Positions 568-63,382 of a stretch of DNA of 64,000 bases are shown here, piece after piece. Location: positions 4,836,001 to 4,900,000 of the forward strand of contig OZ176051.1 in NCBI GenBank assembly GCA_964247055.1, read 5' to 3'. A program made the position numbers and the translations under genes. Each line of letters begins with the position of its first letter. The first letter of the stretch is position 1. This DNA comes from Paragordius varius. Its lineage: Eukaryota > Animalia > Nematomorpha. The notes under the pieces were generated by a model that was not told the DNA's origin, did not search any database, and was given only the letters and a program-made list of their open reading frames with translations.

Positions 568-1729
568 CACTTCGATTCAAATTGGGGTATCTAAATACCC
601 CAGACTAAATTTAAATTAAAATTTTTAAAAAACTACTGAAGGAAACGGTCTCAATTTAAATTTATGCTTCTATCTTGATAAATATTATATAAATATACCA
701 AAATATCTTGATAAAATTTTGTTTTGAAAAAAAAGTTTCATCTCAAACTACTTCGACGCCATTTTTATTTTACAAAAATTTTGCAAAATATCGTCATTTA
801 ATTTTAAGGGTAAAACTAAAGCTTATTTTTTATATAAATTACATCTAACATTGATAGAAATAGAAAAAGCCCTTTATTTTGTATTATTTTTTAATTTTAC
901 AATTTGACACATGTCACGTTGACTAAATTTTTACCTTTCAGTTTTAGCTCAAAACAAGTAAGATCAAGTATTTTTGAATAAATTTTTTTATATATTTCGG
1001 TTTATTAACACTTGGATACAACACACTCATTTTAGTCCTTCGATTCAAATTGAGGTAGTTGGATACCCCAGGCCTGTTTAAAATTAAATGCTTTAAAAAA
1101 TATAGAAGGAATCGATACCATGGCAAAATTTTGCACTTATCTAACATTAATAAACCGAAATGTATAAAAAATTTTATTCAAAAATATCTGATATTATTTA
1201 TTTTAAGCTAAAACCGAAAGGTAAAAATTTCGTCAACGTGACATGTGTCAAATTGTAAAATTGAAAATTATACAAACTAAAGCGCTTTTTCTATTTCTAT
1301 CAATGTTAGATGTAATTTATATAAAAAATTAGCTTTAGTTTTACCCTTAAAATTAAAAAGAAACGATATTTTGCAAAAATTTTGTAAAATAAAAATGGCG
1401 TCGAAGTAGTTTGAGATGGAGCTTTTTTTTCAAAACAAAATTTTATCAAGATGTTTTGGCATATTTATATAATATTTATCAGGTGAGAATATAAATTTAA
1501 ATTTAGACCGTTTCCTTCAGGATTTTTTAAAAATATTAATTTAAATTTATTCTGGGGTATTTAGATACCCCAATTTAAATCGAAGTGTTAATGTTATATA
1601 AGTGCAAAATTTTGCCATGGTTTGGATTACTTCCATACTTTTTAAAGTATTTGATTTTAAACAGGCATGGGGTATCCAACTACCCCAATTTGAATCGAAG
1701 GACTAAAATGAGTGGGTTGTATCCAAGTG
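568..1729 (-). mobile_element. TTAA-targeting (piggyBac-like) MITE, outer copy, interrupted by a second copy of the same family
   Basis: TTAA at 564-567 and 1730-1733; ends CACTT...AAGTG. Removing 1009-1591 gives the reverse complement of the ~575-bp element seen intact at 62811-63382. Confidence 0.85.
1009..1587 (+). mobile_element. TTAA-targeting MITE, inner copy inserted in opposite orientation
   Basis: TTAA at 1005-1008 and 1588-1591; starts CACTTGGATAC, ends ATCGAAGTG; colinear with 62811-63382. Confidence 0.88.
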
Positions 1730-1879: not shown

Positions 1880-2500
1880 TGGTAGATTATGGCATTAAAA
1901 AAATTTTAAAAATGTATATTTTGCCCAAACTTTAAATTTCAATTTTGGTGAGGTGTTTTTATTATGAGGCATGGTAAAAACGATTAGAAAACACTTTTTC
2001 TATGTAATTCGATGATGTTGAACATTTCATAACCTCAAAATTTTGATTAGAGTATTCATTTAAATTTAAATTTTTATTAATATATTGTTTTTTTACGAAA
2101 ATTCACCTAAAATTAAAAAACTTTAAATATTCTGAAGAGATATAAATTTTCATCATTGAATTATATAGAAAATGTATAATATGCTAGTATAGTTTCTATC
2201 ATGCCTCAAAACACCATAAAACTCGGTTTACCATGTTGTTATAATTCGGAAAAACTTTTTTGATTAGCCTGTATTTAAATTTGACACTCAATCTCATAAC
2301 ATGTTTATATTCTAACCAATCCGATTTTTTTGCGCAGTGTGTGATCAATTAAACAAATTAATAATTTTTTTAAATGCTTCTTATAAAACTAAAGTCAATA
2401 GTAATGTAAATTTTCGAATATGATCACTTCAATATTTGTTTGCTCTTTTAAAATTCACCGAGACAAAAACTTTAAATATCGAGATAATTTTTAATAAAGT
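1880..2500. repeat. Foldback repeat with a central inverted repeat
   Basis: gaggcatggtaaaaacg...ttcgatgatgttgaacattt (~1966-2030) pairs with aaattttcatcattgaa...tatcatgcctc (~2140-2207). Same family at 9785-10060 and 63720-63960. Boundaries approximate. Confidence 0.55.
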
Positions 2501-2545
2501 ATAAACATTAATGACCCTTATTTGAAAGGCCCACATGATTGCAAT

Positions 2546-4447
2546 ATGAATTATATAGACCTCGCCACGGTTGTACCCGATCATCCGCGGGCCGTGTATA
2601 AAACTAGATCTGCGAAAATTTTAAACTATGTCACTAAAATATTTAAATTTAATCAAATGGATTTTCAGTTTGCATTTTGGCAAATAATATATTTATTAAT
2701 ATCACCGCAAAAAGTGTAATGATTTCTTAATTTTTTAGTTTCAGAGATTTTCAATATAGGAAAAGTTTACTTCCTTGATTATAATATTTAGCTACGAAAA
2801 ATCAGTATGCACGAGATGATCCTGCTTTTTTAATTATATTGTTGGGAATGATTTGTGGTATATCTATAATAAAATAATTTTAGTTTCGTCCATCGCATTT
2901 TCGTTAACTTTACGATTAGGTTTTGTCGGACTTCTTAGAGTTATAATATGGAATACATTATTTGATTGCGTATTTGTTGGATCCATAATTTCTACTATAG
3001 CATGGTATACATATTCCCTTAATATCTTAGGTTCTTAATGAATAAATTTATGATTGATGAACGATATAAAAACTCCGATGTAGAATGGGCATACGCATTT
3101 GATGTCCATTTAAATGCACTTCTCCCCTTACTGTTAATTTTGCACTTGATTATGTTACCATTTATATACAGTAACAAATTTTTTAATCTTTAATTTTTTA
3201 GTAATTACATATTCTCCTGATTCGCATATACTCACAATGTTTGGCAATTTGTTTTGGTTAACAGCAATATCCTATTACATATACATAACATTTATTGGAT
3301 ATAACAGTATTTTTGAATTATATTGATTCTATAAATAAAATAGATATTAAAATCTATAGTGGTGGATTTTTAACTGATAAAATAACCGGCGAGACCGCTT
3401 TAAATTCAATCGGTTCTGTCATAATTAGTCTTAAACAAATATTATGTATTGCAGCACTATAGTAAAAAACCAATGTAGTTGTGTTAAAATTTAATAATTA
3501 CTGGGCCTTTAAATAATTATATTTAAGCAGAATTTATCAACATATAAGTTAAATATGTTTGCACCTTTTTTATATGTATATTTATTTATTTGGTTAATAA
3601 AGGTTTTCACACAGTAACGCTCATGAATGCATATATAATCAGTCGAATTTAACCCTATTTTTGAATAAAAAGAATATTAAAATAGATTTTTTTGTCCTAG
3701 ATTTTCTGCAAAAAAATTTGTCCTATACAATTTTATATCAAATGCTTGTAAAAATAATTTTTTTATCTTAATGAAAACCTGATTTAGTTGCTATTTTTTG
3801 TATTTTTAGCATAAAACACATGGTGCGAAAATGGGGTTAATTTATATTTTTTTAAGCTTATAATTATGAGAATTACATGCCGCAGAAGTTTTTACATATG
3901 ATGGCTCACAATTTTTTAAGAAATTAAGTCAAGTCTAAAAAACTGATATTTAATTGAAATTGCATAATCATAATTTTTAAATAAAAAACTAACAAATTTT
4001 AGGAAATAATTTAATTTAAGAAAAATAAATCAATTAGTGGTTTGATAGATGGATTTTTACACCTAAAGAATGATCAATACTTTTCGAATTGAAATTATTT
4101 TATAAAAATAGACAAAAACCGTTATTATTTATTACTAAAACTTAATATGCATCTATTAGCAAAGTAATAAACAAATGGATATTTTTCAAATTTCTACTAT
4201 TCAATTTTATTTAAATCCATATTCACTATTAGCTATTTCGGTATAAATGTAAATGGTATGAAATATTTTGCATCCTGTGTGTTTTATATCCTTATTTTTC
4301 TCCCATTTAGGTTTACCCTACATCGCAAATGCAAAACTGTTGCTTAATTTATTCCCAATCCTTATATTGATGTACATTTTATCCGTAATTTTTACATGGA
4401 ACTTAACTTCAATGTTTGTGCGATTTCACAAATATCGAGCACTATAA
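2546..4447 (+). CDS. unc-50: UNC-50 / Gmh1 family Golgi membrane protein, 7 exons
   Basis: Spliced translation QMDFQFAFWQIIYLLISPQKV-FRDFQYRK-TTKNQYARDDPAF...DVEWAYAFDVHLNA...GNLFWL...YYIYITFIGY-SLPYI...HKYRAL* matches the UNC50 family. GT-AG introns at 2716-2738, 2765-2791, 2858-2883, 3005-3030, 3171-3201 and 3307-4310. Confidence 0.93.
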
Positions 4448-6516: not shown

Positions 6517-14933
<8,417 letters not shown>

Positions 14934-16913: not shown

Positions 16914-19811
<2,898 letters not shown>

Positions 19812-19914: not shown

Positions 19915-20787
19915 ATGGTAAAAAATGGGACCTCTTTCAAAAAACGAATTACTTTGGAAAAAACTCCATACTACCTAAAAAGCGATGATAAGTTTGTTGA
20001 TTCTCCGATTCTTAAAGTTTTTTTATAAATATTTGAAGTCAATAGGGCAATTCGACAAAAAATTTATATGTTGTATAAACAAGAGTAGTTCATGGTCCAT
20101 TTATATATGTGATCAACATGCGCTTCACGAGAGAATTTTATTTGAAAAGTATCAGAAAGGTTTGTATACATATACAAAAAGAATTTAATTCTTCCGAATC
20201 GCAAAAAATTGAAAATATAGAAATTTCAGTCAATAACCCTGGCTTACAGTACAATGTACTAGTAAATGTAGGACCCAAAAAAATCTAAATGATATGGGTG
20301 TTGGATATTTCTTAAACGATGATAAATTAATTATAAACCGTGTTCCAAAACTTTTATTAGATTTACACACTTATAACATATATGCGACCAAAGATCTTGA
20401 TTCCAAAATGCGTGATCAAATTTCTGAAAAAGTAAACCCATTTTTTAGCTTTCTTCAAAAAATAATTGTTGACGCCACAGTTCAAAAAAATATATATGTT
20501 AGGATATTAATAGTACCCTTAAAGATATTTTAGGGGATTTTGCTTGTTATCGTAATTAATTTTTTTTAAAAGTAGATGCCATAAAGTTTGGGAAAGTATT
20601 AAACATGAAAACATGCCAGAAGTTAATTATCAATCATTCGAAATGTAAATTACCTGGGCAATGTGCCCATGGAAGACCAAGTGTAATCCTAATTTTAACA
20701 GAAAATAATTATAGCGATTTTTTTCCAAAATTGCGCTACATAACAACCGATAGAATAACTAAATTTTGTTATAAATACAATAAATAA
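19915..20787 (+). CDS. MLH3: MLH3-like protein, apparently only the MutL C-terminal endonuclease/dimerization domain (~230-250 aa)
   Basis: IGQFDKKFI; DQHALHERILFE (20111-20146, the DQHA-X2-E-X4-E motif); KNLNDMG; NRVP; LGDFACYHAIKFG; KCKLPGQCAHGRPS (20662-20679). Frames are joined by GT-AG introns 20249-20271, 20480-20502 (or 20432-20502) and 20552-20575. Start (19915 vs 19985) and the intron at 20160 are uncertain. Confidence 0.8.
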
Positions 20788-21190
20788 CAATGTATATATT
20801 TTATAGAAAAAATATTTTTTCCCACCACTGAAAGGAAAAGACTTGTAGTTATCATAAATAGATGGCGCTTTAAAGCAAAGATATGAATAAACTTCAGTTT
20901 TAACATTAATTATTTGTGCTCGGTTACCATTTGGTAAACTTTTAAAAATTTATTTTGTGGTAAAAAATAGTTTTACCACCTATTTTTGCTTCCAAAAATG
21001 TACGATGTTGCATTTATAAACGAAATCGAAATGCATGTAAAGACGTGTTGAATAAAAAGGAGAGACGGTTAGCACTCCCCTAGAAAAGGACGGACAGGGT
21101 CATTAGACCTTAACCACTCAACACACCTCAGCAGTGTGTTTAGGCACATCGTATCAAGCTTAGCACCTTGATACAACAATTTTTTTTATT

Positions 21191-28700: not shown

Positions 28701-31700
28701 AATTTTACGACAGGAGACAAGTTATTTTTTGATTTTTGATTTACAATAAATAATTTTTGTCAAAAATAGCAAAGGCATACTTTATTGTCATTCTCCTTTT
28801 TATAATTCAAGGCTTGTTCAGTACCAATAACCATAGTCAATGGTATACTCCAGGTCATATTAGATATTTTCATCTCTCCTTCATTCAAAAATTGGTTGGT
28901 AAATTTATTTTGTGAGATATGAAACAAATATTGGTGTGTTGAAGTTCCCATAATGTTACTACGATTTTTTAACATATTTGAATCGGCCTTAACGGGGTCC
29001 GATATGGTAACCAAAGGATAACCATTCTGGAAAAGTAATATATATTTATTTTAAAATAAATTAAAGCCAAAAATTTATTTTAGTAATTCAATAAACATAA
29101 AATAAAAAGTAGAAGTATTGGTTGGGCCAGATTTAAATATGCATGTTAGGCCTATTAGTCGCGTTATTAAAAAATATCTAAATAGCGAATTCAAAGTTTT
29201 ACCCACCAATTCGGAAATTTCATTACATCGCTAAAAACCAACAAATAAAATTATTATATTGTAAAAATAAATACAGGAAATTTTTTCTATAAAAAAATTA
29301 ACCATATTAGTTTAAATTAAATATAGGTGCTATGTATGCTCTACTTGCAAAGCAAATTTCTGAACAATTGAGTAAAATTTCGAATATGTTATCATAATTT
29401 TACATTCAGAGTGAAACAAATTCATTTTTCCACCTCCCCTTAAGAATAAACAATAAGTTTATAAAAAATTTCGATAAAATGTTTGAATTGTACACCATAC
29501 CTGTTTGATCCAGCCATTCATAATGGTTTCAATGGTAGGATAGATTGAGTTATTCGTTAAAGTTTTAAAATGCAACACATTTGGTGCGTGAGTGGTAATT
29601 CCGACTGTTTTTTCACGCACATTCTGTAATGCTTTCCATAAATCCTTTGAGCACGCATTTCCATAAGCATGTTTGGATAGGAAATCGTGCAAACCTAAAA
29701 TTGTGTTTAAAATTTAATATATTTTAAGGTTTCAATATATTCATTTTAATTTTTTTTTGTCTTCATAGGAAGCTAAACTATACCTTGCTTAAAAGTACTT
29801 CGTGTAAGTATAAGCCCATCTAGCATGCTAATTAATAGCGCCCCTTTGTTATAAGAAATTAAATCGAATGCGGATTGCATATCTGATGGTTTGACTACCG
29901 AAGCATGACTCACAGGGCGTGAATATGTGAGAACGTCCAAAAAACTGGCTTTAGGGGCCATCAGGGGTGCGAATCGTTCTCGAAGTTCTAAATATTAAAA
30001 TTTGTGATTTGGCTATTTAAGCAAACTAAACTTTTTAAACAATATATGATTTATGAAATTATAATCTAATGTTTATGTTCAACCTTACAATAAAAATTAT
30101 TATAATATAAAATATCTCGAATGTATCATCATTCCTTCAAACATACTTAGGTTTGTTAAAAGGCCTCAATCTTGGGCTCAATTTTCATTATGTATATAAC
30201 TTTACAATATGACTTCATATATGTGGGAAATTATACAAAAATTAGTAATAGAAAAGGCATAAAAGTCCAAGATCTGATTTTTAGTAAAATATTTTTGTAA
30301 AAGTGGATAATATATAAACTGTTTAAACATTAACATTTCAGCCAATACATTTATAATTAATAAAATTGAGTCGATTATTATAACATGTTTCAATAAGCAA
30401 TATTAATGAGTATTTACTTTCGTAGAAACTTACATTCACCCCATTTGTGTTTAAGATTATATTTTATATCATCTATAATTATTGGTTGATTTTTTGGATT
30501 TAAACCGCTGTCCAGATTTCGTTAAGATATACGGTTAGATTGTGTAATACAAAAATATATTTTCAATAAAGTTAAAAAAATTATCCAAGAATGTTAGAAA
30601 AAAAAGCATGTTTTTTTACTCCATTGAGGAAAAAGGGAATCTGCACAAAGTACTTCCATATAAGTAGCGAAACCTTCTTTCAACCACAAATCATCCCACC
30701 AACTCATTGTGACCAAATTTCCAAACCACTAAAATCAGTTAAAAAGTTAGAGTAAGGGAATCAATTATGCAAGTTTTTTAACATAAAACTATTTTTATAC
30801 ATCCTTTCAATTTTAGATTTAATTTTGATAGCATCATATGAAATTGCTGAATAGATAAACTGTGGGTTAAACACCATATAAGCGAAAAAGGCAAAATCAT
30901 AAGGCGCTAAGCAGCTGATTTTATTTAACTTTGTAACTTTACAGTGTAAAATGGCTTAAGACTTTACAGTTGTAATGTATAAAAAACATTTTAAAAAATC
31001 TATAATTACATATGAATTATAAGAATAAATAGAAAGAATCAGTATGATAAATCCATTGATGTTTAAGAATGTTTTTTAGGGAATGAAATTGTCGATTAAA
31101 ATTTTGGAGTTGTTGTTCTGTAGAAATAATTCATGTGAGATTATAATTCTGAGTGATAGAACTTCTTCCGGATAATAAAAGTGACAATAAATTGATGAAG
31201 ATAATGAGATAAATTCCGTTTATCACCGAATGTGAACAAGATTTCCTATAAAATCAAAAGGTACGCGCATCTCAGGAGTGAACATACCAAGTTCTTCTCC
31301 GCGCCTGCAGCCGATCATTATTTATTCTTATATATCAATACACCACCACTAAACTAAATTCCTACATGGAAAGCCATAATTCTAAAATAAGCTCCCGTAA
31401 TTTAGAAATAAAGATGGCCACCTGGAACACCCGTGGCACTTCAGATAACAAATTGGATATAATAATTCGCGAGATGAAACGTTTAAACATCCATGAGTTA
31501 GGACTGTCGGAGACTCATATGCAACATAACTCACACAAAATATACGACAATTACTCGTTTTATAACTCTGGCGGGGAACTCAAACGAAATGGATGCGGTT
31601 TCTTAATATCGAATAATTTTGCCAAACATACTGATATAGATAGACCTATCTCCGATCGTATTATATCCCTATGAATCAACACCAGACCCCAGGCTATAAC

Positions 31701-34700
31701 AATATATCAAATCTATGCCCCTACGAGTGTCTCACCCGAAGACGAATGTGAAAAGTTCTATAATGAGTTACAAATGGCTCTTTGCGAAACATCCAAGAAA
31801 AACATAACTTTCATCATCGGCGATTTTAACGCTATCATAGCTAACGATAAAACAGACAAGGTCACTGGTGGAAAAGGCCTTGGTAAAGTGAAAAACCCCC
31901 GTGGTGAAAGGCTAATCGATTTTTGCCAACAAAAAAATCTCTTTATAGCGAACTCATTTTTCAAACAACCTAACAGACGGCTCTACACCTGGACCTCACC
32001 GTGTCGTAAACACAGGAATCAAATATATTACATATTGGGAATGCAAAAATACAAAAGCTCATTTCAAAACATCCGGTGCTCGAGTGCAGACTGCAACTCA
32101 GATCATAACCTATTAATGGCCAAGATCAAAATAAAGCTACAACTTCCCCAACCGCAAAAAAACTTTTCCAAAACTAAATTGAACTACAAACTTAAACCTG
32201 CCGATTTTACTCCAATCCTTAACAATAAATTTGAATCCCTAAAATACGAAACACTGAACACAGATGATCTTTGGTCTACTATTCACAAAATTACCATCGA
32301 AACAGCTAAAGAATATATACCGCCTGCCACAACAAAAAACAAAAAAATTTACCATATCACAACAAAGCATCGACCTAATTGAACAGAGAAGAGTAGCGAA
32401 ATCCAAGGGCACTCCCCTTGAGTACAAAAATATTAATAATGAACTACAAAAAAGCATAAGATTTGACAAAGAATCTCATTATAATACAATCTGCGCTAAC
32501 CTAGAGCAAGCTGCTAAACTTAATCACAACTACTTCTCTTATATTAAAGACATTCAACCGCGCAAAAAACAAATATACAAAGGTCCTATGTCTCATTCAA
32601 ACGGAAAACTTCTAATCGATAAAAAAAGGAGTAATTAAACTCTGGAAGAATACATCCAAAATTTATTCTCAAAACAATCAAATATAATCGCCATGAACTC
32701 TGAACAAACTTATGACCCTCCTATACTAAAAGGAAATTGAATGGGCCCTGAAGTATTCATCAACCGGCAAAGCAGAAGGATTCAATGATATCCCTACCGA
32801 GTTACAAAGGCATATTCCCATAAAACTAATTCTTTAGTTATTTCAAAAAATCTTCAATGAGGCAACATTCCCGACGGACTGGAACAAATCACTTGTGGTC
32901 CCTATATTTAAAAAGGGCGATCCTAAACTATGTGAAAACTACCGTACAATAGCATTGATCAATCAAACCTCAAAAGTTTTCTTATAAATAATACAAAACC
33001 GTCTACAAACATATGTCAAACCGGAAATATCAATGACACAGGCAGGCTTTAGAGAAAAAAGAGGATGCCGAGACATGATCTCAAACCTTAGATGGATAAT
33101 GGAAAAAAACTGTGAATTCCAAAATGAGCTACACCTATGTTTCGTGGATTTTTCTAAAGCCTTTGATACCGTTCAACATGACATTCTCTGGAAGGCCCTT
33201 AAACAAATAGGAGTTTCCGATCACTTAATCAAACTAATTAAATCCATATACTCCAACTCCTACCTATCACTTAACACCCCGCATGGCCCGACCTCTTGGA
33301 GCCCAATGAACATAGGTTTGCGTCAAGGCTGCATTTTATCCCCCATGTTATTCAACATATATTTGGAAAGTATCATGAGGGATCTAAATCTGCCAGGAAT
33401 AAAAGCGGGGGGTCACAATCTGACGACTCTCCAATACGCAGACGACACGGTTATCTTAGCAAATTCACAAACAAACCGAAAACTGTCTCCGAACTTTTAT
33501 AAATGTGTGCAAAAAATACAATCTTACATTAAACCTCAATAAAACTAAAATTTTACATATCAACTCCCCTCATTCCTATGACTCGCTTCGGATTAATGGC
33601 GAAACAATTCAAGTAGTCAACGAATACACATACCTTGGAAGCATTATCAACAACTTAAGCTCCAGTTCCCAAGAAATAGAAGCATAGCTATCGCCAAATG
33701 CGCTCTAGCCTCACACTACAAGTTATGGAAATCTCATGACATAACCCTTAAAACAAAAATCCGACTAGTAAATGCATTAATCTTTCCTATCATGTTATAC
33801 GGATGTGAAAGCTGGACTATCAAAAGTGAAGACGAAAAAAGAATAAACGCGTTTGAAATGTTTTGCTGGAGAAAAATACTTGGTATAACATGGAAGGACA
33901 AAATAAAGAATATCGACATTGTAAATAAAATTAACGCACAAACAACGCTTCGGGGTAAAATAATAAAACAAAAATTCGGTTACTTTGGACACATTATTCG
34001 GGGCAATTCTTTGGAAAAGGATATTATGTTAGGAAAAGTAAATGGTAAGAGAGGAAGAGGACGCAGACGTATTCGCTGGGTAGACGAAATATTATCACTT
34101 TCCAAATTGTCATTGCAAAAACTATCTCAAAAAGCTCACGACAGAACCGAATGGAGGAAGTTTTCCTACAAAATCGCTAATGGTCGATAACCGACTACAA
34201 GCTCAACAACAACAACAACAACAACATATGAATTAACTTTGCAATCATTTTAATATGCTAATGATTGGAATATATGGTACAGATACCCAATTATCACCTA
34301 AATTATCAAAATTAGACAAAACAAAATATTATAGGCCTTTTTAGTATTACGTTTTTTTAGCTTACGCACGTTCGCCCAATTTTAATATAACCTTACATAT
34401 AAAATATATGATATTTCTATTATGTATAAACTTTATTGTTTAACCAAAATGTGATATGTTGTTTAATGTAATTCTATTATGAGATTTATCTAGTCAGCAA
34501 TTTAACAAGTAACATTTGGACTTATTACTTGATGTGCCATTTCATGTGCAACTATGATAGTTATAAACTCTTTTTGATATTCTGAAGTGACATTGGGTGT
34601 GTACAGCAAATCAACCATGCGATATGTTACTAATCCCCAGTTTTCCATACCTCCAGCGAAAAAATCAGGAATCGCAATAAAATCTAATTGTATAAAAAAT

Positions 34701-44400: not shown

Positions 44401-47400
44401 GTTTCAAAGGGTACAGAATGTGAGATATTATTTTCATGAAGCCAAACTAACTAAAATATATGGAATAATAAACGGTTGCAGAAAATACGCAGTTAATTTA
44501 ATTTAAAATTTGAGCAAAAGACGCGTTCAAAATATTAACCCTTTAAAAGATTTTTATAATGTACTTATATAAGTATACTAAAAAAAGTATGTAAATTCAA
44601 ACTTGGATATGTTATTGAAACAATGTTGCAATAATATAATTAAACATGATATATTGAATACTTGATTAACATTTTCATTCGTAGCATGATTTGAGGGTGA
44701 ATTAACCATTATTGTAAGAGGGATTTGCCACATGGCGTTTGAGCGTTCTTTTTTATCTTCAGTGGCAAATTGATTAGTAAATTTATTTTGATAAATATCA
44801 AGCAAATATTTCGAATTTGGTTTTGAACTCAACGTATTTTGTTTCTGTGATAATTTGTAATCATCCATGTGAATGGGATCAGATATGGTAACTAAAGGGT
44901 AACCTTTCTGTTACACAAAATAAAATAATAATTACGATTTGTAAATATATAAAGGTGGATGATTAAATTTGAGTCAAATGCCAAATGAATGCAATATAAA
45001 AACTTTAAAGAGGGATAATTCTAATAAATTATTAGTTGTAGATAAAAACAGAGCTGTTTTCTTAGTTTCAATAAAATATGTCATAGAAATTGTTGAAAAA
45101 AGAGACAGGACATCCGACAAACTTTATAAACCAATAAAAAACATCTTAAAAAGGTGGGAGAACCCATTCGAATCCCAAAATTGCACAATTTTTGCATAAT
45201 CACTGACGGTTGGAGACTGTATTTACATTAAAGAATTTGATTGTTTGCAATTACCTAGATGATACGCTTAAATTGGACCGGAGAAAGACTACCCTCATAA
45301 TTTAAGAGCCTTAAAGAGCTTAAATGAAAGATTCTGAATATAAATTGTCAAACAACCTGTGTAATCCAGCCATTCATAATGTTTTCAATGGTGGGATTTG
45401 TAGAATTACTACCATCATTTGGGTCAACAGATACGTGCCATATCAAAGATGAATTATCTTTGCCAGGGTTTATGCCAGAGGCCTCTTCGCGGGCCTTTTG
45501 CAAGGCTCTCCATAAATCGCTAGAACGGGCGTTTCCATATGCATGTTCGGACAGGTAATCATGTAAACCTATTTTAGGCACATTATATATAGAAAGTAAT
45601 AATATTTTTGTTCCAATTAATACAGTATAGCAGGTGTATTCAACTATAAACTTAAACAGCACAATATAGCAAACGCAAAAAAGGAACCTTTTTGAAAAAC
45701 AGCCCTCGTAAGGACAAGTCCATCAAGCATACGTAGCAAGAGTGATCCCTTGTTGTAGGAAATGGCATCAAACATAGATTGCATATCCGATGGTTTGACA
45801 ACCGTGGCATGGCTAACAGGGTGAGAATCTGCCAGCGAATCTAAAAAACTTGCTCGGGGCGCTGTGTCTGGAGCAAATTTTTCCAACATTTCTATCAAGC
45901 GTATAAGAGAAAAGAGGAATGATAAAAAAAATAAGTCTAATTTGAAATTAAATAATTTCAGCAATATAGAATTTCTTTAAAAACATGGATTTTCAATAAT
46001 TACTAGTAATCTTTGTCAAACATGTATAAAATTAGTATTAATGGAAAAAACACTCAAAAATAATGCGAAATATAGTGTTAAAAGCGTTTTTTGCTAGTAA
46101 ATTTTAATACATTTGACACCAATAAACCATACTACCAACGATTCATAAATCATAGTTGGGGCGCACACAAATAATAAACGGTGATTTAAATCAGCAAGTT
46201 TGATTGGTTTAATTGTTTTAATTTTAAGTTATTTTTATAAAAAAACATGCCAAACGATCAAGAATTAATATAAAAATTAATAAAGTATAAATATTATTAA
46301 TTTCTTTAAATTTCGTTCTTGGATAATAAACCTAATTTATTTATAATTATTCAACTAATACGACATTTGCCAAATCATAGTAGCTATAAAATAATAAATA
46401 ATGGCATGATGATAAATTAAAATTTGCAAAAATTTATTTTTCCACTTAAAGAAAAAATTCCAAAAATTAAAATAATCTTCAGTACATATATATATATATG
46501 TATAAACAAAAAATATTACTCCATTCAGGAAAAACTGCATCTGCGCAAACAGATTCCATATAGGTTGCAAAACCTTCATTTAACCACAAATCATCCCACC
46601 ATTTCATAGTGACTAAATTTCCAAACCACTACAAAAAAAATGTATAAATATAAAATGTGCGTGATTATTTATACAAAATTTGCGCAATTGAATTATAACC
46701 GAAACAATTTCAATCAAAATGATCTAATAAATATCGTTTAAAAATAATTTAGGCACATATACCTTAATCTCAAAGTGCATTTTGGCTGTTTCAGCCAAAA
46801 ATTATTAATATATTATCAAAAAACTAATTAATACATTTGTAAATATACAATTTACAATTCAAATTCACCTGTTAATTGGTTATAACCTTAAGTTATATTA
46901 TTATTATTTATTATATAATTTATATGACATTGTATGTACAAGTATTCTAATTATAGTTGCCAACTTGATAACCTTAAATTATACGACATTGTATTTAATA
47001 AGTAATCTAATGACTATTATATATATGGATATTTTATATGACATTGTATTTGATACAAATAGTATTCTAATTTATTATTGTAATTTATCCTTGCTAAAAT
47101 ATATAAATACACCTATACCAACACTGAGCTATCAGTTAATAAATGTACTTAATTTGAGTTATTAATTCATATGTCGTCTCTATTTTAAACGTATTATTGG
47201 TGCCGTTAATGGACGAAATTTCCAAAATCAGTATTAACGAATACGATCCAAACACTAATTTTAAACAATACTTAAAGCACGTGAATCGTATCTTAATCGC
47301 TAAAAACATTAATCCAAATGATGAAATATTAAAAAACTTATTCCTGGCCTATGCAGGACTACACACAATCTCTAAACTGGAAAACCAAGCGTTTCCTACG

Positions 47401-50400
47401 AAAATAGAGGAGATGACATGGGCTCAAATTCAAAAATTGGCAATGCAAATCTTTGCCCCGGACAAAAGCATATGGCTGAGTCGTAAAGAATTCTTTAAAA
47501 CAACCAGACAAGAAGGCGAACCAATCATGAGTTATATGGAAAGATTAAAAGTACTAGCTGACGATTGTGATTTTGAAGGCAATATCTCATACTTATTAAG
47601 AGATGTTTTCTTGATAGGACTAAATATGCCAATCCTAGAACGGGAATTACATATAAGATTCCCCACGGGCCAAAATGAAGGCGAACCAGTGTCACTACAA
47701 ATGGTAATTGATATGGCGCATTCCCTCGAAGTGATTGAACCGAAGGTGCTAAAAATCCGCCAAGAAAGAACCATACACCAAAGAGACTGCCAAAGATGTG
47801 GAAAATGTCATGCAATCGATAAATGCAGTGCAAAGGGTCAACGATGCTATAAGTGCGGAAAATACAACCATTTTGCAAAGTATTGCCGAACCAAATATCC
47901 CACCAAACCAGGTATTCGGGCAGTGACAAATTCAACGGGGATGGGCCCAACGATAACAGTGCAACTTAACGGAATAGAAACATCAATGTTGTTTGACACC
48001 GGTGCGGATGTGACAGTTATCAATGAGAGATGCTGGAAATCAACAGGACAACCACGACTGGAGGTAGGACAAAGACTGTCCACATACAATAATGAAACTA
48101 TCCCAACCATGGGTAAAACAGAATTGCGCGTAACAATGAACGGTATGACAAAAACCCTTGAATGTTTTGTAACCGAGGGAGATCGGCCATTAATTTTTGG
48201 TCTCCCTTGGATCCGTGCATTTGCTTTAAATTTACCAGATAATGTGATGATCAATAATATAACTAATAAATCTATATATAACCAGTATAATAGGTTGTTC
48301 TCGGACGGGTTAGGCTGTCTTAAGGATATGGAGGTATCGATTGCGATAAGAAATAATGCAACACCCAAAATATACCCTTGCAGGAGAGTTCCCCTACCCC
48401 TCCAAGAACGTGTGGAAAAGGAACTAGATAGATTGATAAACCTAGGTATCTTGAGAAAAATTGACCCAAATAGGGAGCGAATATCGTGGGCCACACCAAC
48501 AGTAAATATATTAAAACCAAATGGCCAAATAAGGATATGTGCGGATTTTCGAATCAGCCTCAATCCTCATTTGCTACCCGATTCTCATGTAATCCCCACC
48601 TTTGATGAACTAATCTCAAGAACAGCTCAAGGGACAGTTTTTACGTCACTAGACCTGAAGGATGCTTACCTGCAAATTCCCATAAAACAATCATCACAAC
48701 CACTACTGACCATAACTACCCATCAAGGTTTTTATTGTTACCAACGACTTCCATTTGGGTTGACTACGGCCCCTCATATATTTCAACGAATCATGGATAA
48801 TTTGATTGGTGATATACCAGGTATATGTATCTATTTAGATGACATATTAATATCAGGTAAAACAAGAACCGAACATGACGCCACATTGACCAGGGTATTG
48901 CAACGATTGGAAGCTGCAGGGTTGAAACTGAGCCGAGACAAATTGCAACTTGCCGTTTCATCTGTCAATTACATGGGATATGAAATTTCAAAGAATGGAA
49001 TTCGTCCCACCAATGACAAAATTCAAGCTTTGATCAATTGTCCGAGACCCACCAATAAGACAGAACTAAGATCATTTTTAGGACTGCTAAACTTTCATGA
49101 ACGATTCATACCAAATCTCCATCAAGCGATATGCAACCTCCACAGAAACACAGGTTCAAGTAGACCATGGGCCTGGACCGAGATAGAAGAAGAGGAGTTC
49201 CAATCCGCAAAACAACTAATGATAAATTACAATACATTAATACCGTATAACCCAAATTGGCCAATACTAATAGAAACAGACGCATCAAACAAGGGATTTG
49301 GAGCGATCTTACTACATATTACCCCGGAAGGAAAGCGTCCCATATCATACGCTTCACGCAAATGTACCGATGCCGAAACCAATTATTCAACAATAGAGAA
49401 AGAAGCAAAAGCTATCACGTATGCCATAGAAAAATTTAAACCATTTATATATGGTAGAAAATTCAAAATTATAACCGACCACAAACCACTAATCGGGTTA
49501 TTTGGTCGAACTCGAAATTTACAAAATATTAATAATGCTAAACTTCTTAGATGGATCTATAAAACATCGGGATACGACTATGAAATCGAATATAAAAAAG
49601 GGCAAAACAACTTAGCCGACGCTCTATCCAGATTACCAAATAATGATAATACCATGGAGGTGCAAAATGAAGATGATGAGGTATCACACACGGTAAAATT
49701 TTTAACTATGAATAAATTTAATCTAAGTAAAGAGTTAGTGGAGGAGGAGATAAGGTTAGATCCATTGGCAAACAAACTTAAATCAGCAATAAGAACAAAT
49801 GATTGGAGTGATCCAAGTATAAAGGAATTTCTGAAAGTAAAAAATGAGATTCAAATATATTATAATCTTTTATTTGTAAATGACAGATTACTAATACCCA
49901 CATCTTTGCAGCGGGACGTAATGAAATTCCTACATACTGGACATAACGGAGCGCAATCGATGAAACAACAAGCAAGACAATCCATATATTGGCCAAACTT
50001 AGAAAAAGATTTAGAAAATTTTGTAGAAACATGTGAACCGTGTCAAAGAAACAAGCCTAATATAAAGGAAAATCCAACGTGGAAATGGAATTTCAACACC
50101 GCGTTGTGGGAGAGAATTCACATCGACATAGCCGGCCCCATAGATGGTTATTTTTGGTTAGTTACCATTGATAGCGCTTCAAGATGGGTTGAGGTGGATC
50201 TACTCAAATCGATAACCTCACAACAATTATTGAATTGTTTAGAAAAACACATGGCCAGATTTGGTTTTCCGAGACAGATAGTCACTGATAATGGGCCATA
50301 CTTTACATCCCATGAATTTAGAAGTACCTTACATAATCTTAATATAAAACATATTTTAGTGAGTCCATACCATCCCAAGTCCAATGGATTGGTTGAAAGA

Positions 50401-53400
50401 TGTATTGCAACCCTCAAATTCAGATATAGAGCTACGAAAACGCAAACAATGCATGCCCACGAGGCAATCAACACGATTTTATATGGCTATCGAAACTCAA
50501 CACACAGTGCCATTATGAATACACCATCACAAGTCTTTCTGAAGAGACACCCAAATGGTCCGATGTCATGGCTCAAAACACAAACAACTGAGTTTATCGA
50601 TAATGAAATAGAACCGACTCGCCAGTTCGTTCCAAGAGAGAAGGTTTTTATAAAAAATGAAATAGAAAAAGGATGGAGGGCAGGGGAAATATTAGAACGC
50701 CGGGGCCCATTATCATATATGGTAACAGACGAAACAGACAGAGTTCTTAGAAAACACGCTGATCAATTAAAACAAAGAATGGAATGTCCGAGAACAACCA
50801 CGCCAGCGCCCGAAACACCAATTAATTCCGAAGAATATACCTCTACTCCACCAGATCTCGAAGCCATAAACAATAATATACAACCATCGCCAATAGGCAT
50901 AACCACACAGGATAATAACGTAGCTCCAACAACGAATATAGACATGCCTAAACCCAGGTACCCACAACGCCAGCGAAAACCCCCAGACCGCTTTACTATA
51001 GGGGGAAGATAATGTTAATTGGTTATAACCTTAAGTTATATTATTATTATTTATTATATAATTTATATGACATTGTATGTACAAGTATTCTAATTATAGT
51101 TGCCAACTTGATAACCTTAAATTATACGACATTGTATTTAATAAGTAATCTAATGACTATTATATATATGGATATTTTATATGACATTGTATTTGATACA
51201 AATAGTATTCTAATTTATTATTGTAATTTATCCTTGCTAAAATATATAAATACACCTATACCAACACTGAGCTATCAGTTAATAAATGTACTTAATTTGA
51301 GTTATTAATTCATATGTCGTCTCTATTTTAAACGTATTATCACCCTTGAAGAATTTAAATTCATCCTTAAACAATTGACACCATATTTACCATTAAACAA
51401 TTCAAATTCACCCTCAAATAAAATATAAATTTGTTATGATTAAAAATTACCAATCTTTTTATATATTTTTAAAAAATAAAAATTTTGTTTTAAATTAAAA
51501 TAATACTGAACAAATAATAATCTATGGCATAAAGATATATTTCTTATTAATAATGAGTTATTTTAATTCGAAAACAAACAATTTATTTTTAGGGTGAATT
51601 TGAATTGTTCAAGGGTGGTTTTGAACTATAAATGGTATAAATTGCTTTTATTAAGACTAAACTTTACGTAAAAACCCATACCTGATGAGCCAATTCATGA
51701 GTAATTACTATGGCGACACGCTCCTTTTGCGATTCGGAAGTTATGTTTGGTTTATACAACAAATCAACCATGCGATAAGTAACTAAGCCCCAATTTTCCA
51801 TGGCACCCACGGAAAAATCTGGGATTCCAATCAAATCTGTAAAAATGGATTGATGAATAATAAGGAACCGAATTTTTAATAAAGTAAAAAATAGTGTGAA
51901 ACGCTAAGACAAACAGAGAGTTTGTCTGATTGCAGCGTAATATAAAAACTCACTTTTAGGAAAATATTTAAAGATTTGTTATTTAGGATGGAGTCTTATT
52001 GAATATATCCATAATTAAACGATTACACATCTCAAAACATGAAGTGCACATTTAAAGGAACAATTCATCATATTGTTTGTGGCCCAAATATATTATATCA
52101 GCAACTTACAGTAAAAATTAAAATTATACGGTCAAAACGTCAAAAAGACAAATATTTTTTCAAAAGACCGCTGTACTTTTTTGAACTTGATCCTAAATAT
52201 AACACAGTATGTACTTTGCAAGTATGAAATAGCGATGTATATTGGTAACACAACCAATTAAATTGTTTACATAGAAAAAAAATAAGTTTCAACAAATAAT
52301 GGTCTTTTGTTTGTATAATTCCAATTTTTGGAAAATTCCAGTGATATAAATCATATCTATACCAATTTTGGGTAATGGAAACGGTATATCGAAAAAATCA
52401 TTGTAAAAATTTATGGCTTTAACAGCAACGCCCAAAGCAAATTTAGCTTGATCAATTTGTTCTTCGGGTGCATGAACTCCAACCTAAACAAGTATAAATT
52501 CAAATTTATTATGATTCAATTATGAATCAAATCAAATATACTTTTTGTGGCCCTTAACCTTATAAAAATATTTAAGTTAAAAAAGCAACAAATCTTACGC
52601 CATTGAGCTTATGTATAAGATGAATTTTGAATAACAATTGTTAAATATAATTAATTATATTGGTTATGAAACGAATTAACCTGAAATATAATAAATTTTT
52701 ATTGTATTCGCATTCACCAATAAAATTGTTTATATTCACACACGAAGGCACATTTATAATCAGATCAGTTGCGATATTTTATTGTTATAATCTTTAACTT
52801 GTAATTATTTCAATGATTGTCCTACAGAATGTATTGATAAACAACTATTTCATAAAAAGCTGGATAGTTTACGATAGTGCACCATCAAATTAATTGTTAA
52901 ACAACAACAGGAACAACTTATTTTATTAACAAACATCGGATAAAAAGGTTACATATTTACGACCTATAAATTATTGAAAAAATAGTACATAAACTTACAA
53001 GTACTCCATTTCGCGTGGTATCAGTTACAGCCTTAAAATCACAAATGACCCACGCCACCAGGTATGTGCTCATTACTACTGATGTTTCAAACACATCTCT
53101 TTGCAGGTGCACAGAAGCGGGACTAGCCAGTGTTTTAGCCTTTGGCATGTTTGAAAGGGACGTGAGCGATGCTGGTCTATCTATGGCCATGACGAATTTA
53201 GCCTTCCTATCTGGTTCATCCATACAGGGAAAGGCACGCCGAGCATAATTTGGTTCAAATTGAGTTGATAACAAATAACTATAATATGTGTGAGTAGGGA
53301 GAAAAGTTCAACAAATAACGTTTAGTTTAATCTTTACTTTTAAAATATTTTTTTCATCCAAGTACACTATGGGTATTAATGCTGACCTATTCACATTATT

Positions 53401-57433: not shown

Positions 57434-58766
57434 AATATCAATGAATAAATTTCAAATTATGGATAAATTGCGCTAAAAATTGAAAAAATAATTAGATTAT
57501 GTCGTTTAAATCTATCGATAAAAAATTTCAAAAAAGTTACAAAGTTGGCTATTCAATTTTTTGTTCCTTTTAAGCATAGTTATGGTAATAAGCTTACGCT
57601 AAAGCATACTAATAAAAAAATGTGTTACAGTGTCCAGTTAAATAAATTAATAAAGGGTAGGCAGGATTAATTTTAAATTTAAAAATTAAAAATGAAAGAT
57701 GCGCACACGCATGGTTACATACCCTTATTAAAGATGGAAATAATGTAGAAACTTGATTAGGATAAGTTAATGATTCTCTTTGATTCTGTAAATATTGATG
57801 GCTCAAGGAAGGCCTATCATAAAAACGTGCATAATGAAAATGATAAGAAGGATTAACGCCGTTTAAATAAAATTGTTTTTCAATAAACACAGAATTATTA
57901 TTTAGATAGTTATGATGTGTATTATACAAATTCATGAGGAGACAATTCAATCACTAAAAATCATTATGGATAGATTCATAAAGAAAATGGCCCGTAAAAG
58001 TATCAAACTGTTTTATTATATACGTTTGTAATATAAAAGAATCAAATATTCTAATGAAACAAATTTTTTAAGAATAAAACATAATTAAAAAATTTGAATA
58101 AGGAAAAAGTTTACTATATTTATAGGATGTATATTTTCAAAATCAAAACCCAAACACCTGTACAAATAAAATGTTTTTTTTTCATATTAAAATTAAAAAT
58201 AAATAATTTTATTTATAAATAAACCAAATTATTAAAATAAAATTGTAAAATTCGCAAAAGATATTTTATTATTATGGATCCACTAAAAAGAGTATTTTTT
58301 TGAATATGTTAAAAATTTATTTAGCAACGTTTTCAAATATCATGGTATTTTAAAAATGTTGAATGGATGTCATGTCCAATTAACTTAATTTTGGACATAG
58401 GAAAAGGGTAATAATTGATTAATAAAAAATATAATTCAGTAACATAGACAATAATCAATCCAATTTATATAACTAAATTAACGCGTAAAATAATTATATT
58501 ATTAAAATTGCAGAAACTCTTATCCTTAATAATATAAATTAAAGAGAATTACTATGAGAATCAAAATAGCCATAATAATCAATATAGACTTTCTGGATGA
58601 TAAACGTTTAATTTTGAGATAAGCCAAATCCGGATGGTCATATAAAGGTTTTTTCTCGTATCCTGATACGAATTCCAAGCGTGAATCGCCTAAAATTAAC
58701 AAATAAAATTGTACCTGGAAAGCTATCAATGTCTCGCTTATTAATTTTAGTAAAATGACTTGTCAT
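41404..58766 (-). CDS. M1 family zinc aminopeptidase (aminopeptidase N-like), paralog 2, type II membrane-anchored
   Basis: ATG 58766, 25-nt intron 58690-58714, signal anchor [14 protein letters not shown]|[51 protein letters not shown]|[26 protein letters not shown]; ends WLKKHIPSY*. Exon structure parallels paralog 1. Confidence 0.92.
43136..43707. mobile_element. MITE of the TATACCATTT/21-bp-repeat group, different subfamily
   Basis: Ends tattccatttgcac...gtgcaaatggtata; subterminal 21-bp repeats cttgaacacttcaagttggtc in both arms. Confidence 0.8.
47198..47206 (+). other. Primer-binding site complementary to the tRNA-His 3' end
   Basis: TGGTGCCGT matches the reverse complement of ...ACGGCACCA for 9 nt, directly abutting the 5' LTR. 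Confidence 0.65.
47209..51012 (+). CDS. Gag-Pol polyprotein (Gag with two Cys/His knuckles, PR, RT, RNase H, integrase)
   Basis: CQRCG...H...C and [14 protein letters not shown]; LFDTGA; YLDD; TDAS...DHKPL; H...H...C..C then D,D,E integrase. First ATG at 47209 (the ORF track starts at TTG 47197). Confidence 0.95.
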   Translation: MDEISKISINEYDPNTNFKQYLKHVNRILIAKNINPNDEILKNLFLAYAGLHTISKLENQAFPTKIEEMTWAQIQKLAMQIFAPDKSIWLSRKEFFKTTRQEGEPIMSYMERLKVLADDCDFEGNISYLLRDVFLIGLNMPILERELHIRFPTGQNEGEPVSLQMVIDMAHSLEVIEPKVLKIRQERTIHQRDCQRCGKCHAIDKCSAKGQRCYKCGKYNHFAKYCRTKYPTKPGIRAVTNSTGMGPTITVQLNGIETSMLFDTGADVTVINERCWKSTGQPRLEVGQRLSTYNNETIPTMGKTELRVTMNGMTKTLECFVTEGDRPLIFGLPWIRAFALNLPDNVMINNITNKSIYNQYNRLFSDGLGCLKDMEVSIAIRNNATPKIYPCRRVPLPLQERVEKELDRLINLGILRKIDPNRERISWATPTVNILKPNGQIRICADFRISLNPHLLPDSHVIPTFDELISRTAQGTVFTSLDLKDAYLQIPIKQSSQPLLTITTHQGFYCYQRLPFGLTTAPHIFQRIMDNLIGDIPGICIYLDDILISGKTRTEHDATLTRVLQRLEAAGLKLSRDKLQLAVSSVNYMGYEISKNGIRPTNDKIQALINCPRPTNKTELRSFLGLLNFHERFIPNLHQAICNLHRNTGSSRPWAWTEIEEEEFQSAKQLMINYNTLIPYNPNWPILIETDASNKGFGAILLHITPEGKRPISYASRKCTDAETNYSTIEKEAKAITYAIEKFKPFIYGRKFKIITDHKPLIGLFGRTRNLQNINNAKLLRWIYKTSGYDYEIEYKKGQNNLADALSRLPNNDNTMEVQNEDDEVSHTVKFLTMNKFNLSKELVEEEIRLDPLANKLKSAIRTNDWSDPSIKEFLKVKNEIQIYYNLLFVNDRLLIPTSLQRDVMKFLHTGHNGAQSMKQQARQSIYWPNLEKDLENFVETCEPCQRNKPNIKENPTWKWNFNTALWERIHIDIAGPIDGYFWLVTIDSASRWVEVDLLKSITSQQLLNCLEKHMARFGFPRQIVTDNGPYFTSHEFRSTLHNLNIKHILVSPYHPKSNGLVERCIATLKFRYRATKTQTMHAHEAINTILYGYRNSTHSAIMNTPSQVFLKRHPNGPMSWLKTQTTEFIDNEIEPTRQFVPREKVFIKNEIEKGWRAGEILERRGPLSYMVTDETDRVLRKHADQLKQRMECPRTTTPAPETPINSEEYTSTPPDLEAINNNIQPSPIGITTQDNNVAPTTNIDMPKPRYPQRQRKPPDRFTIGGR

Positions 58767-62239: not shown

Positions 62240-62745
62240 TTTATAAGCTAACACTTTGATTCGAATCGGGATATCTAGGGACCCTAAACCATATTGAATG
62301 TATATTGCTTCTACCTTAATAAAATTTATATAAAAAAGCCAACATGTCAAAATGTAATTTAGTTTTTTTAAAAAAAAGCTCCATATCAAACTACTTCGGT
62401 GCTATTTATATTTATATCGTCCAATTTTATTCTAACGCTAAGATTCAAGCTAATATTTTCTTTCAATCACCTCTAAAATTGTAAACAGGAATTTTGGTTT
62501 TTTGTATTACTTGTATATTTAGCTATTTCACACATGTATTGTTAATTAAATTTTTATTGAGGTTTATCCATAAAGTTAAATCAAGATTTTTTAATTTGTT
62601 TTATATTTTGATGATTCAATGTTATATAACGGCAAACGTTTGCAATGGAATTCCATATTTTTAGATATGATTTTAAACAGGCATGGAGTCCCTGAAAACC
62701 TTAAGGAACGGAAAACTAAAATGAATGTTTTGAATCCAAGTGTTT
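62240..62745 (-). mobile_element. Degenerate reverse-oriented TTAA-MITE copy
   Basis: taacactttgattcgaatcggg start, aagctccatatcaaactacttcg middle, ttttaaacaggcatgg...atccaagtgt end. Confidence 0.55.
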
Positions 62746-62810: not shown

Positions 62811-63382
62811 CACTTGGATACAACACATTGATTTTAGTCCTTCGATTCAAATTGGGGTAGTTAAATACCCCACGCCTGTTTAAAATATTCCTAAAAAAGA
62901 TGGAAGGAATCGAAACCATTGCAAAATCTTGCACTAATATAACATGAATAAATCGTAGTATATAAAAAATTTTATTCAAAAATACTTCATATTACTTATT
63001 TTAAGCTAAAACCGAAAGGTAAAAATTTAGTCAACGTGACATGTGTCCAATGGTAAAATTAAAAAATAATACAAAATAAACCGCTTTTTCCATTTCTAAC
63101 AATATTAGATGTAATTTAATAAAAAATTAGCTATGATTTTACCCTTAAAATTAAATGAAGACAATATTTTGCAAAAATATGTAAAATAAAAATGGCGGCC
63201 AAGAAGTTTGACATGGAACTTTTTTTCCAAAACAAAATTTTATTTAGATATTTTGCCATATTTATACATATATTACTAGGATAGAAGCATAAATTTAAAT
63301 TGGGACCGTTTCCTTCAGTAGTTTTTTAAAAATTTCAATTTAAATATTGCCTGGGGTAGATACCCCAATTTGAATCGAAGTG
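62811..63382 (+). mobile_element. Intact solo TTAA-MITE, 572 bp
   Basis: TTAA at 62807-62810 and 63383-63386; CACTT...AAGTG ends; asymmetric subterminal repeat CTTCGATTCAAATTGGGGTA. Confidence 0.88.

Follow-up and report, generated by a model that had tools for sequence, protein, structure and literature searches.

Five introns of 23 to 31 nt and one of 1004 nt interrupt a single UNC-50 gene, and segments in the same tiny size range lie in other conserved genes of this genome. We interpret them as ordinary U2-type GT-AG introns whose length would have been reduced almost to the physical minimum, at about 22 to 36 nt, and we put the probability of this interpretation at roughly 85%. Removal of the segments restores colinear conserved proteins and leaves GT-AG ends on what is removed, so that they read as introns, which the standard spliceosome would excise at the RNA level. 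The window, by which we mean the whole stretch of 64,000 nt analyzed here, corresponds to contig C2:4836001-4900000 of a 110.5-Mb assembly in 44 contigs, and has 25 to 30% G+C in a genome of about 25% GC.

Tiny introns in UNC-50, PRMT1, and an MLH3-like gene

The UNC-50 locus (2546-4447, forward strand) comprises seven exons, separated by introns of 23, 27, 26, 26, 31, and 1004 nt (Table 1). In a three-frame reading of positions 2500 to 3400 the coding pieces jump between frames, and the unspliced stretch carries 13 in-frame stops, while the seven-exon model of 765 nt has a sole, terminal stop and encodes 254 aa. Single exon pieces match the Pfam UNC-50 profile (PF05216) in colinear order. Database searches were run with one exon each, and the joined model was used only for the frame check and for a local alignment, in which the spliced protein is 49% identical to the full-length homologue P0067 over 237 aa (E 1.5e-88). 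Across the six junctions this alignment has a single one-residue gap, which lies at no junction and sits 5 aa downstream of that of intron 5. All five tiny segments that a preliminary description had placed in this gene are present, each of them bounded by GT and AG, and its claim that introns of 23, 27, 26, 26, and 31 nt follow one another and restore the frame is borne out by the colinear Pfam matches and the 254-aa model. For intron 4 the length of 26 nt stands, and the coordinates given there, 3006-3031, are corrected to 3005-3030. The kilobase-scale intron that was said to share a gene with the tiny ones is the 1004-nt intron 6 (3307-4310). As UNC-50 carries both sizes, the same cell must remove both, and the earlier proposal that one spliceosome handles sub-30-nt and long introns agrees with their presence in the same transcript. 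A shorter candidate for the sixth intron, of 37 nt (3307-3343), was ruled out, as the frame downstream of it has no UNC-50 similarity and the true last exon is at 4311-4447.

No protein derived from transcripts of this or a closely related species turned up in protein databases, either by exact lookup of ten window open reading frames, by a word search with a 141-aa exon of an M1 aminopeptidase, or by a HMMER search with UNC-50 exon 1, whose two best matches were unrelated environmental samples.

Table 1. Positions in the window of the exons and introns discussed in the text, with the observations that bear on each
Feature	Length and phase	Position	Strand	Observations
UNC-50 exon 1		2546..2715	+	Start codon to donor; Pfam UNC-50 profile 1-29; homologue alignment
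UNC-50 intron 1	23 nt, phase 2	2716..2738	+	GTAATG...TTTTAG; junction ...SPQK[V]FRDFQYRK, gapless against homologues
UNC-50 exon 2	26 nt	2739..2764	+	FRDFQYRK corresponds to YRNFHYRK in P0067
UNC-50 intron 2	27 nt, phase 1	2765..2791	+	Retention gives in-frame TGA
UNC-50 exon 3		2792..2857	+	TTKNQYARDDPAF aligned with QTKDQWARDDPAF-type homologues
UNC-50 intron 3	26 nt, phase 1	2858..2883	+	Frame and homologue alignment
UNC-50 exon 4		2884..3004	+	Pfam UNC-50 profile 62-99
UNC-50 intron 4	26 nt, phase 2	3005..3030	+	GTATAC...CTTAG
UNC-50 exon 5		3031..3170	+	Pfam UNC-50 profile 102-145, E 3.8e-12
UNC-50 intron 5	31 nt, phase 1	3171..3201	+	Frame
UNC-50 exon 6		3202..3306	+	Pfam UNC-50 profile 153-180
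UNC-50 intron 6	1004 nt, phase 1	3307..4310	+	GT...AG; frame closes to the 254-aa open reading frame
UNC-50 last exon, including stop codon		4311..4447	+	Pfam UNC-50 profile 173-219
Candidate intron, collagen-olfactomedin gene	31 nt	8841..8871	-	GT-AG; collagen-like frame joined to unconserved frame
PRMT1 intron	30 nt, phase 0	19671..19700	-	In-frame, exact join to EMLKDEVRT; retention gives in-frame TAA
MLH3-like intron 1 (tentative)	22 nt	20017..20038	+	ATG-bearing open reading frame joined to SIGQFDKKF..., the MutL_C start
MLH3-like intron 2	22 nt	20160..20181	+	Frame evidence only
MLH3-like intron 3	23 nt	20249..20271	+	Connects open frames of 56 and 86 codons
MLH3-like intron 4	23 nt	20480..20502	+	Required for the shift from the exon c frame to DINSTLKDILGDFACY
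MLH3-like intron 5	24 nt	20552..20575	+	...GDFACY[H]AIKFGK...CAHGRPS; retention gives in-frame TAA
M1 aminopeptidase paralogue B intron	3800 nt	30729..34528	-	Same position as that of paralogue A; LINE reverse-transcriptase fragments inside
M1 aminopeptidase paralogue A intron	5053 nt	46629..51681	-	Junction ...THELAHQ/WFGNLVT
Candidate intron, uncharacterised gene	25 nt	58690..58714	-	GT-AG; connects frames of 28 and 53 codons

The 30-nt intron of PRMT1, which had also been claimed before, is confirmed by an exact junction, and the exons that flank it match the methyltransferase and PRMT_C profiles, so by sequence we regard it as equally secure as the tiny introns of UNC-50. The other PRMT1 introns measure about 60, 75, and 260 to 445 nt. 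A small MLH3-like gene has five introns, all of them tiny (22, 22, 23, 23, and 24 nt). Among its exons, the first conserved one matches the beginning of MutL_C and the MutL/MLH3 C-terminal domains, its last exon matches residues 197-235 of the MLH3 C-terminal domain (E 9e-5), and the middle exons are placed by frame continuity only, which together lends moderate support to the five introns being real. The two that the preliminary description had listed (20249-20271 and 20552-20575) have to be removed if one frame is to run from the beginning of MutL_C as far as the C-terminal motif of MLH3, and hold at that moderate level, and the remaining three (20017-20038, 20160-20181, and 20480-20502) are additional to it. 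A 17-nt GT...AG segment within exon c of the same gene was ruled out as an intron, as its removal would break the frame.

Two other proposed introns, 8841-8871 and 58690-58714, keep part of their earlier standing: both start with GT, end with AG, and connect open frames, but homology of the flanking exons is missing, with no match for the 3' flank of the former and no Pfam match on either flank of the latter. The first of them belongs to a gene with collagen repeats and an olfactomedin domain ("colmedin" type; 12786-6520, reverse strand), whose introns range in length between about 100 nt and about 2 kb. Immediately downstream of this gene, at 5.3 to 6.3 kb, there are fragments of LINE reverse transcriptase.

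These two, out of the ten cases in the preliminary description, are the ones without homology support, and they are what would favor taking the segments not as introns but as assembly indels or as insertions in decaying pseudogenes. We consider this very improbable, as every segment has GT-AG ends and a length in a narrow band, the pattern is repeated on three contigs in genes that are unrelated, splicing yields an intact UNC-50 that shares 49% identity with homologues along its entire length, and the assembly reaches chromosome scale, with 110.5 Mb in 44 contigs. Ciliates have short internal eliminated sequences of a size similar to these segments, a resemblance that would fit their removal from DNA, or else a bypass in translation. 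The boundaries here are GT...AG and not TA...TA, a full spliceosome is encoded, and there is no sign of DNA elimination, all of which makes this an even fainter prospect than assembly or pseudogene artifacts. Excision as introns is the reading that we follow below.

Splice signals and splicing machinery

All 13 tiny introns in the window start with GT and end with AG. The 5' end is GTA in nine and GTT in four, the 3' end is TAG in 11 and AAG in two, and the A+T content ranges from 70 to 90%. The branch motif is inconsistent: about five of the 13 have a TTAAT-type yUnAy site near the 3' end, at a distance of 6 to 8 nt in four of them, several others have a weaker yUnAy at 11 to 16 nt, and the rest have only A-runs. 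The long introns of the M1 aminopeptidase and myosin genes have GTW...YAG ends, mostly TAG or CAG, and short and long introns thus share the same weak signals (GTW...TAG). It is plausible that the tiny introns have little or no polypyrimidine tract and a branch region that is A-rich and loosely defined, as described for dicyemids and myxobolids (PMC13644364). We propose that signals are degenerate genome-wide, consisting of GTA or GTT, an A-rich or TTAAT-like stretch 6 to 15 nt before the 3' end, a few T's, and mostly a final TAG. The splice sites of a tiny intron would probably be paired across the intron, with the branch adenosine squeezed to 6 to 15 nt from the 3' end.

The inventory of spliceosome components suggested in the preliminary description (snRNAs, SF1, U2AF, and SF3b) recovered U1, U2, U5, U6, SF1, a U2AF65-like protein, and SF3B1. 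There are at least 35 genomic copies of U2 above the Rfam cut-off and four copies of U5. The best U1 copy keeps the 5' end ACUUACCUG, the best U2 copy keeps the GUAGUA branch-site box, and the best U6 copy keeps the ACAGAGA box. SF1 and SF3B1 are encoded, and the exons of the U2AF65-like protein are present as a colinear set. Judged on these snRNA boxes and on the presence of the three proteins, the machinery looks standard.

The same inventory bears on the suggestion, made with the first description of these introns, that they are handled by modified machinery. To this we add the possibility of a second machinery, and examples of either would be an altered U2AF/SF1 step or an SPF45-type factor. 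The tiny introns have no room for a normal polypyrimidine tract, and their branch point would have to lie less than about 15 nt from the 5' splice site, far below the spacing that vertebrate spliceosomes tolerate. Human short introns are reported to use SPF45 in place of U2AF (PMC8363638), and the authors who described micro-introns in tapeworms also speculated on altered machinery (PMC4040987). However, the snRNA boxes are canonical, SF1, U2AF65-like, and SF3B1 are encoded, the end signals are common to tiny and long introns, which occur together in one transcript, and the ends of the tiny introns have no U12-like features. The suggestion therefore finds no support here and we regard it as unlikely, so the ordinary U2-type pathway stays our preferred explanation.

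With respect to the minor spliceosome, none of the 13 tiny introns of the window starts with [AG]TATCCTT, the U12-type 5' site (RTATCCTT; branch box TCCTTAAC), and by their ends they are not U12-type. U12 snRNA was not found in a whole-genome search. The window itself contains a U6atac gene (21045-21187, forward strand; Rfam RF00619, 66 bits) with an intact core, AAGGAGAGA...GGUUAGCACUCCCCU, so a minor spliceosome is probably present in this genome, and its absence, which we had considered, was rejected on account of this gene. Nematodes, by contrast, are not known to have kept a minor spliceosome. A weak U4atac-like match (28 bits) overlaps the U6atac gene on the opposite strand.

Intron lengths across the genome and the origin of the DNA

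A genome-wide search with the Pfam myosin-head profile gave 71 exon matches in eight genes. At the loci that were read, a myosin on contig C5 has introns of 27, 32, and 36 nt and another on C6 has one of 33 nt, all four with GT...AG ends, and about twenty other myosin junctions span 71 to 1128 nt, with one doubtful junction of 40 nt. The 36-nt intron (within C5:4359951-4360286, reverse strand) is a multiple of three and free of in-frame stops, and its retention would add 12 residues without truncating the protein. At C1:8855400-8859250 (reverse strand), several myosin-head exon matches (profile 83-451) fall inside one open frame of 1271 codons, spaced by up to 1.5 kb. The intervening sequence could represent large inserts that keep the frame, or spacer that lacks stops. 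In SF1 and SF3B1, all introns are of ordinary size.

Altogether we sampled about 85 introns, of which 17 (the 13 of the window and the four in myosins) measure 22 to 36 nt, almost none 37 to 59 nt, many 60 to 130 nt, and the remainder more, with most of the non-tiny ones between 60 nt and the maximum of 5053 nt. As the sample is small and was partly chosen because of the finding, its two-mode shape is provisional, and so is the estimate that tiny introns are a minority lower mode, roughly 5 to 20% of the about 85 sampled. They would be the lower mode of a broad distribution, with many introns of 60 to 130 nt and a kilobase tail that is often filled with transposons. They also cluster by gene: of the six introns in UNC-50 five are tiny, as are all five of the MLH3-like gene. 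Scans for GT...AG segments that connect two open frames were set aside, as their counts in this AT-rich DNA matched those of control dinucleotide pairs, and such scans miss short exons. A log-odds model of codon use, fitted to exons of the window, was dropped, as it separated coding from noncoding sequence too weakly for short exons.

The longest introns in the window belong to two tandem M1 aminopeptidase paralogues on the reverse strand (A, 55301-41407; B, 36459-22740), which are 43 to 72% identical exon by exon, and whose other introns measure about 83 to 1982 nt. The Peptidase_M1 profile of Pfam is continuous over the 5053-nt intron of paralogue A, with positions 26-78 matched on one side and 79-115 on the other. 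This intron contains a gypsy-type element (open reading frame 47158-51009, forward strand, with gypsy domains matched). The intron at the HExxH/WFGNLVT junction has been enlarged in both paralogues by different retroelements, gypsy-type in one and LINE in the other. Another repeat has copies at window positions 693-904, 1280-1464, 62323-62481, and 63134-63325, with the translation KKSFISNYFDAIFILQ.FCKIS...KGKTKA.FLYKLHLTLIEIEKAL. These copies lie in both orientations near either end of the window and point to an interspersed repeat family, possibly of the foldback type.

The mitochondrial contig (C44, 15,693 bp) carries over 25 perfect inverted repeats, whose arms measure 50 to 208 nt with almost no loop between them, and its cox1 is uninterrupted. 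According to a 2023 paper, such repeats are confined to Nematomorpha and spare cox1 (PMC10380579), and from this hairpin-packed contig the genome is probably that of a nematomorph. Just upstream of cox1, at about 6750 to 7450, a 72-nt palindromic unit is repeated in tandem. ARAGORN with bacterial settings gave no tRNAs on it. The N-terminal domain of nematode cuticle collagens was not found in this genome, an absence that is uninformative. The G+C content of Gordionus montsenyensis, 26.9%, is near the value of about 25% found here, while sequenced hairworms have been reported at 200 to 300 Mb, against 110.5 Mb for this assembly.

Comparison with other lineages and significance

A survey of 51 animals published in September 2026 found introns below 30 bp only in myxobolid myxozoans and in D. 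japonicum, linked them to tiny, highly reduced parasites, and predicted that more lineages would be found (PMC13644364). The genome studied here falls in neither of the known sub-30-nt lineages (Dicyemida and Myxobolidae), as seen from its mitochondrial hairpins and from its size and GC content compared with D. japonicum, and in the literature that we searched there was no report of tiny introns in hairworms.

In myxobolids the median intron is 27 bp in Henneguya salminicola and 22 bp in Thelohanellus kitauei and Myxobolus rasmusseni, and the signals described for myxobolids and dicyemids are a reduced GTa and AG with a few A's before the AG, with canonical U2 and with U2AF present (PMC13644364). 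The introns described here resemble those of myxobolids in their size of 20 to 30 nt, GT-AG ends, 5' GTa, A-rich sequence ahead of the AG, and near lack of a polypyrimidine tract, and also in the canonical U2 and U2AF and in the clustering of short introns within genes. They differ in that myxobolid tiny introns are the majority, in compact and fast-evolving genomes of cnidarian parasites, whereas here they are a minority in a bilaterian that is probably an ecdysozoan.

For dicyemids, a median of 27 bp with two thirds of the introns under 30 bp has been reported in Dicyema sp., and a mean of 38 bp in D. japonicum (PMC6543705, PMC6736024). Sub-30-nt GT-AG introns in conserved animal genes are common to both cases, but nearly all dicyemid introns are tiny and only a minority are so here. 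The genome of D. japonicum has 67.5 Mb and 36.7% GC, compared with 110.5 Mb and about 25% GC, and the mitochondrial genome found here is like that of hairworms and unlike that of dicyemids.

Bimodal intron lengths are known from parasitic flatworms, tapeworms among them, in which micro-introns with a mode of ~32 to 36 bp occur beside introns of up to 20 kb, and the modes in Gyrodactylus salaris are at ~32 and ~58 bp (PMC4040987). They share with this genome a micro-intron mode, a second short mode, and much longer introns, as well as a non-random set of genes for each mode. Here the lower mode lies lower (22 to 31 nt in the window and at most 36 nt in myosin genes), the second group begins at about 60 to 70 nt, and the phylum is a different one. 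The architecture therefore resembles that of flatworms, and the absolute lengths resemble those of dicyemids and myxobolids. Such animal introns had been presented in the preliminary description as exceptional and mostly known from dicyemids, which is out of date, given the 22- to 27-bp medians of myxobolids (PMC13644364) and the flatworm mode (PMC4040987). Outside animals, Stentor introns are 15 to 16 nt long and the canonical spliceosome can remove introns below 30 nt, as cited in PMC13644364, although ciliate introns have a unimodal length distribution and no kilobase-scale members, unlike those described here.

On balance we lean toward Nematomorpha being the third independent animal lineage with introns below 30 nt, the first in Ecdysozoa, and the first large-bodied animal with an uncompacted genome to have them. 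If this is true, extreme intron shortening has taken place without genome-wide reduction, and tiny introns share transcripts with kilobase-scale, transposon-filled ones. Should the animal be a hairworm, a macroscopic ecdysozoan would have evolved the trait too, as a minority class of introns in a genome of 110 Mb that bears transposons. The UNC-50 pre-mRNA, with its 23-nt and 1-kb introns, is a suitable substrate for testing how a single spliceosome measures the two sizes. There are consequences for annotation as well. A pipeline that sets a lower bound on intron length would break up or miss UNC-50 and genes like it. Such genes may likewise be broken by gene finders and BUSCO-type tools built for longer introns, and this could inflate both the "gene loss" and the low completeness scores that have been reported for hairworms. 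If the interpretation holds, the minimum length of an animal intron would be separable from genome compaction.
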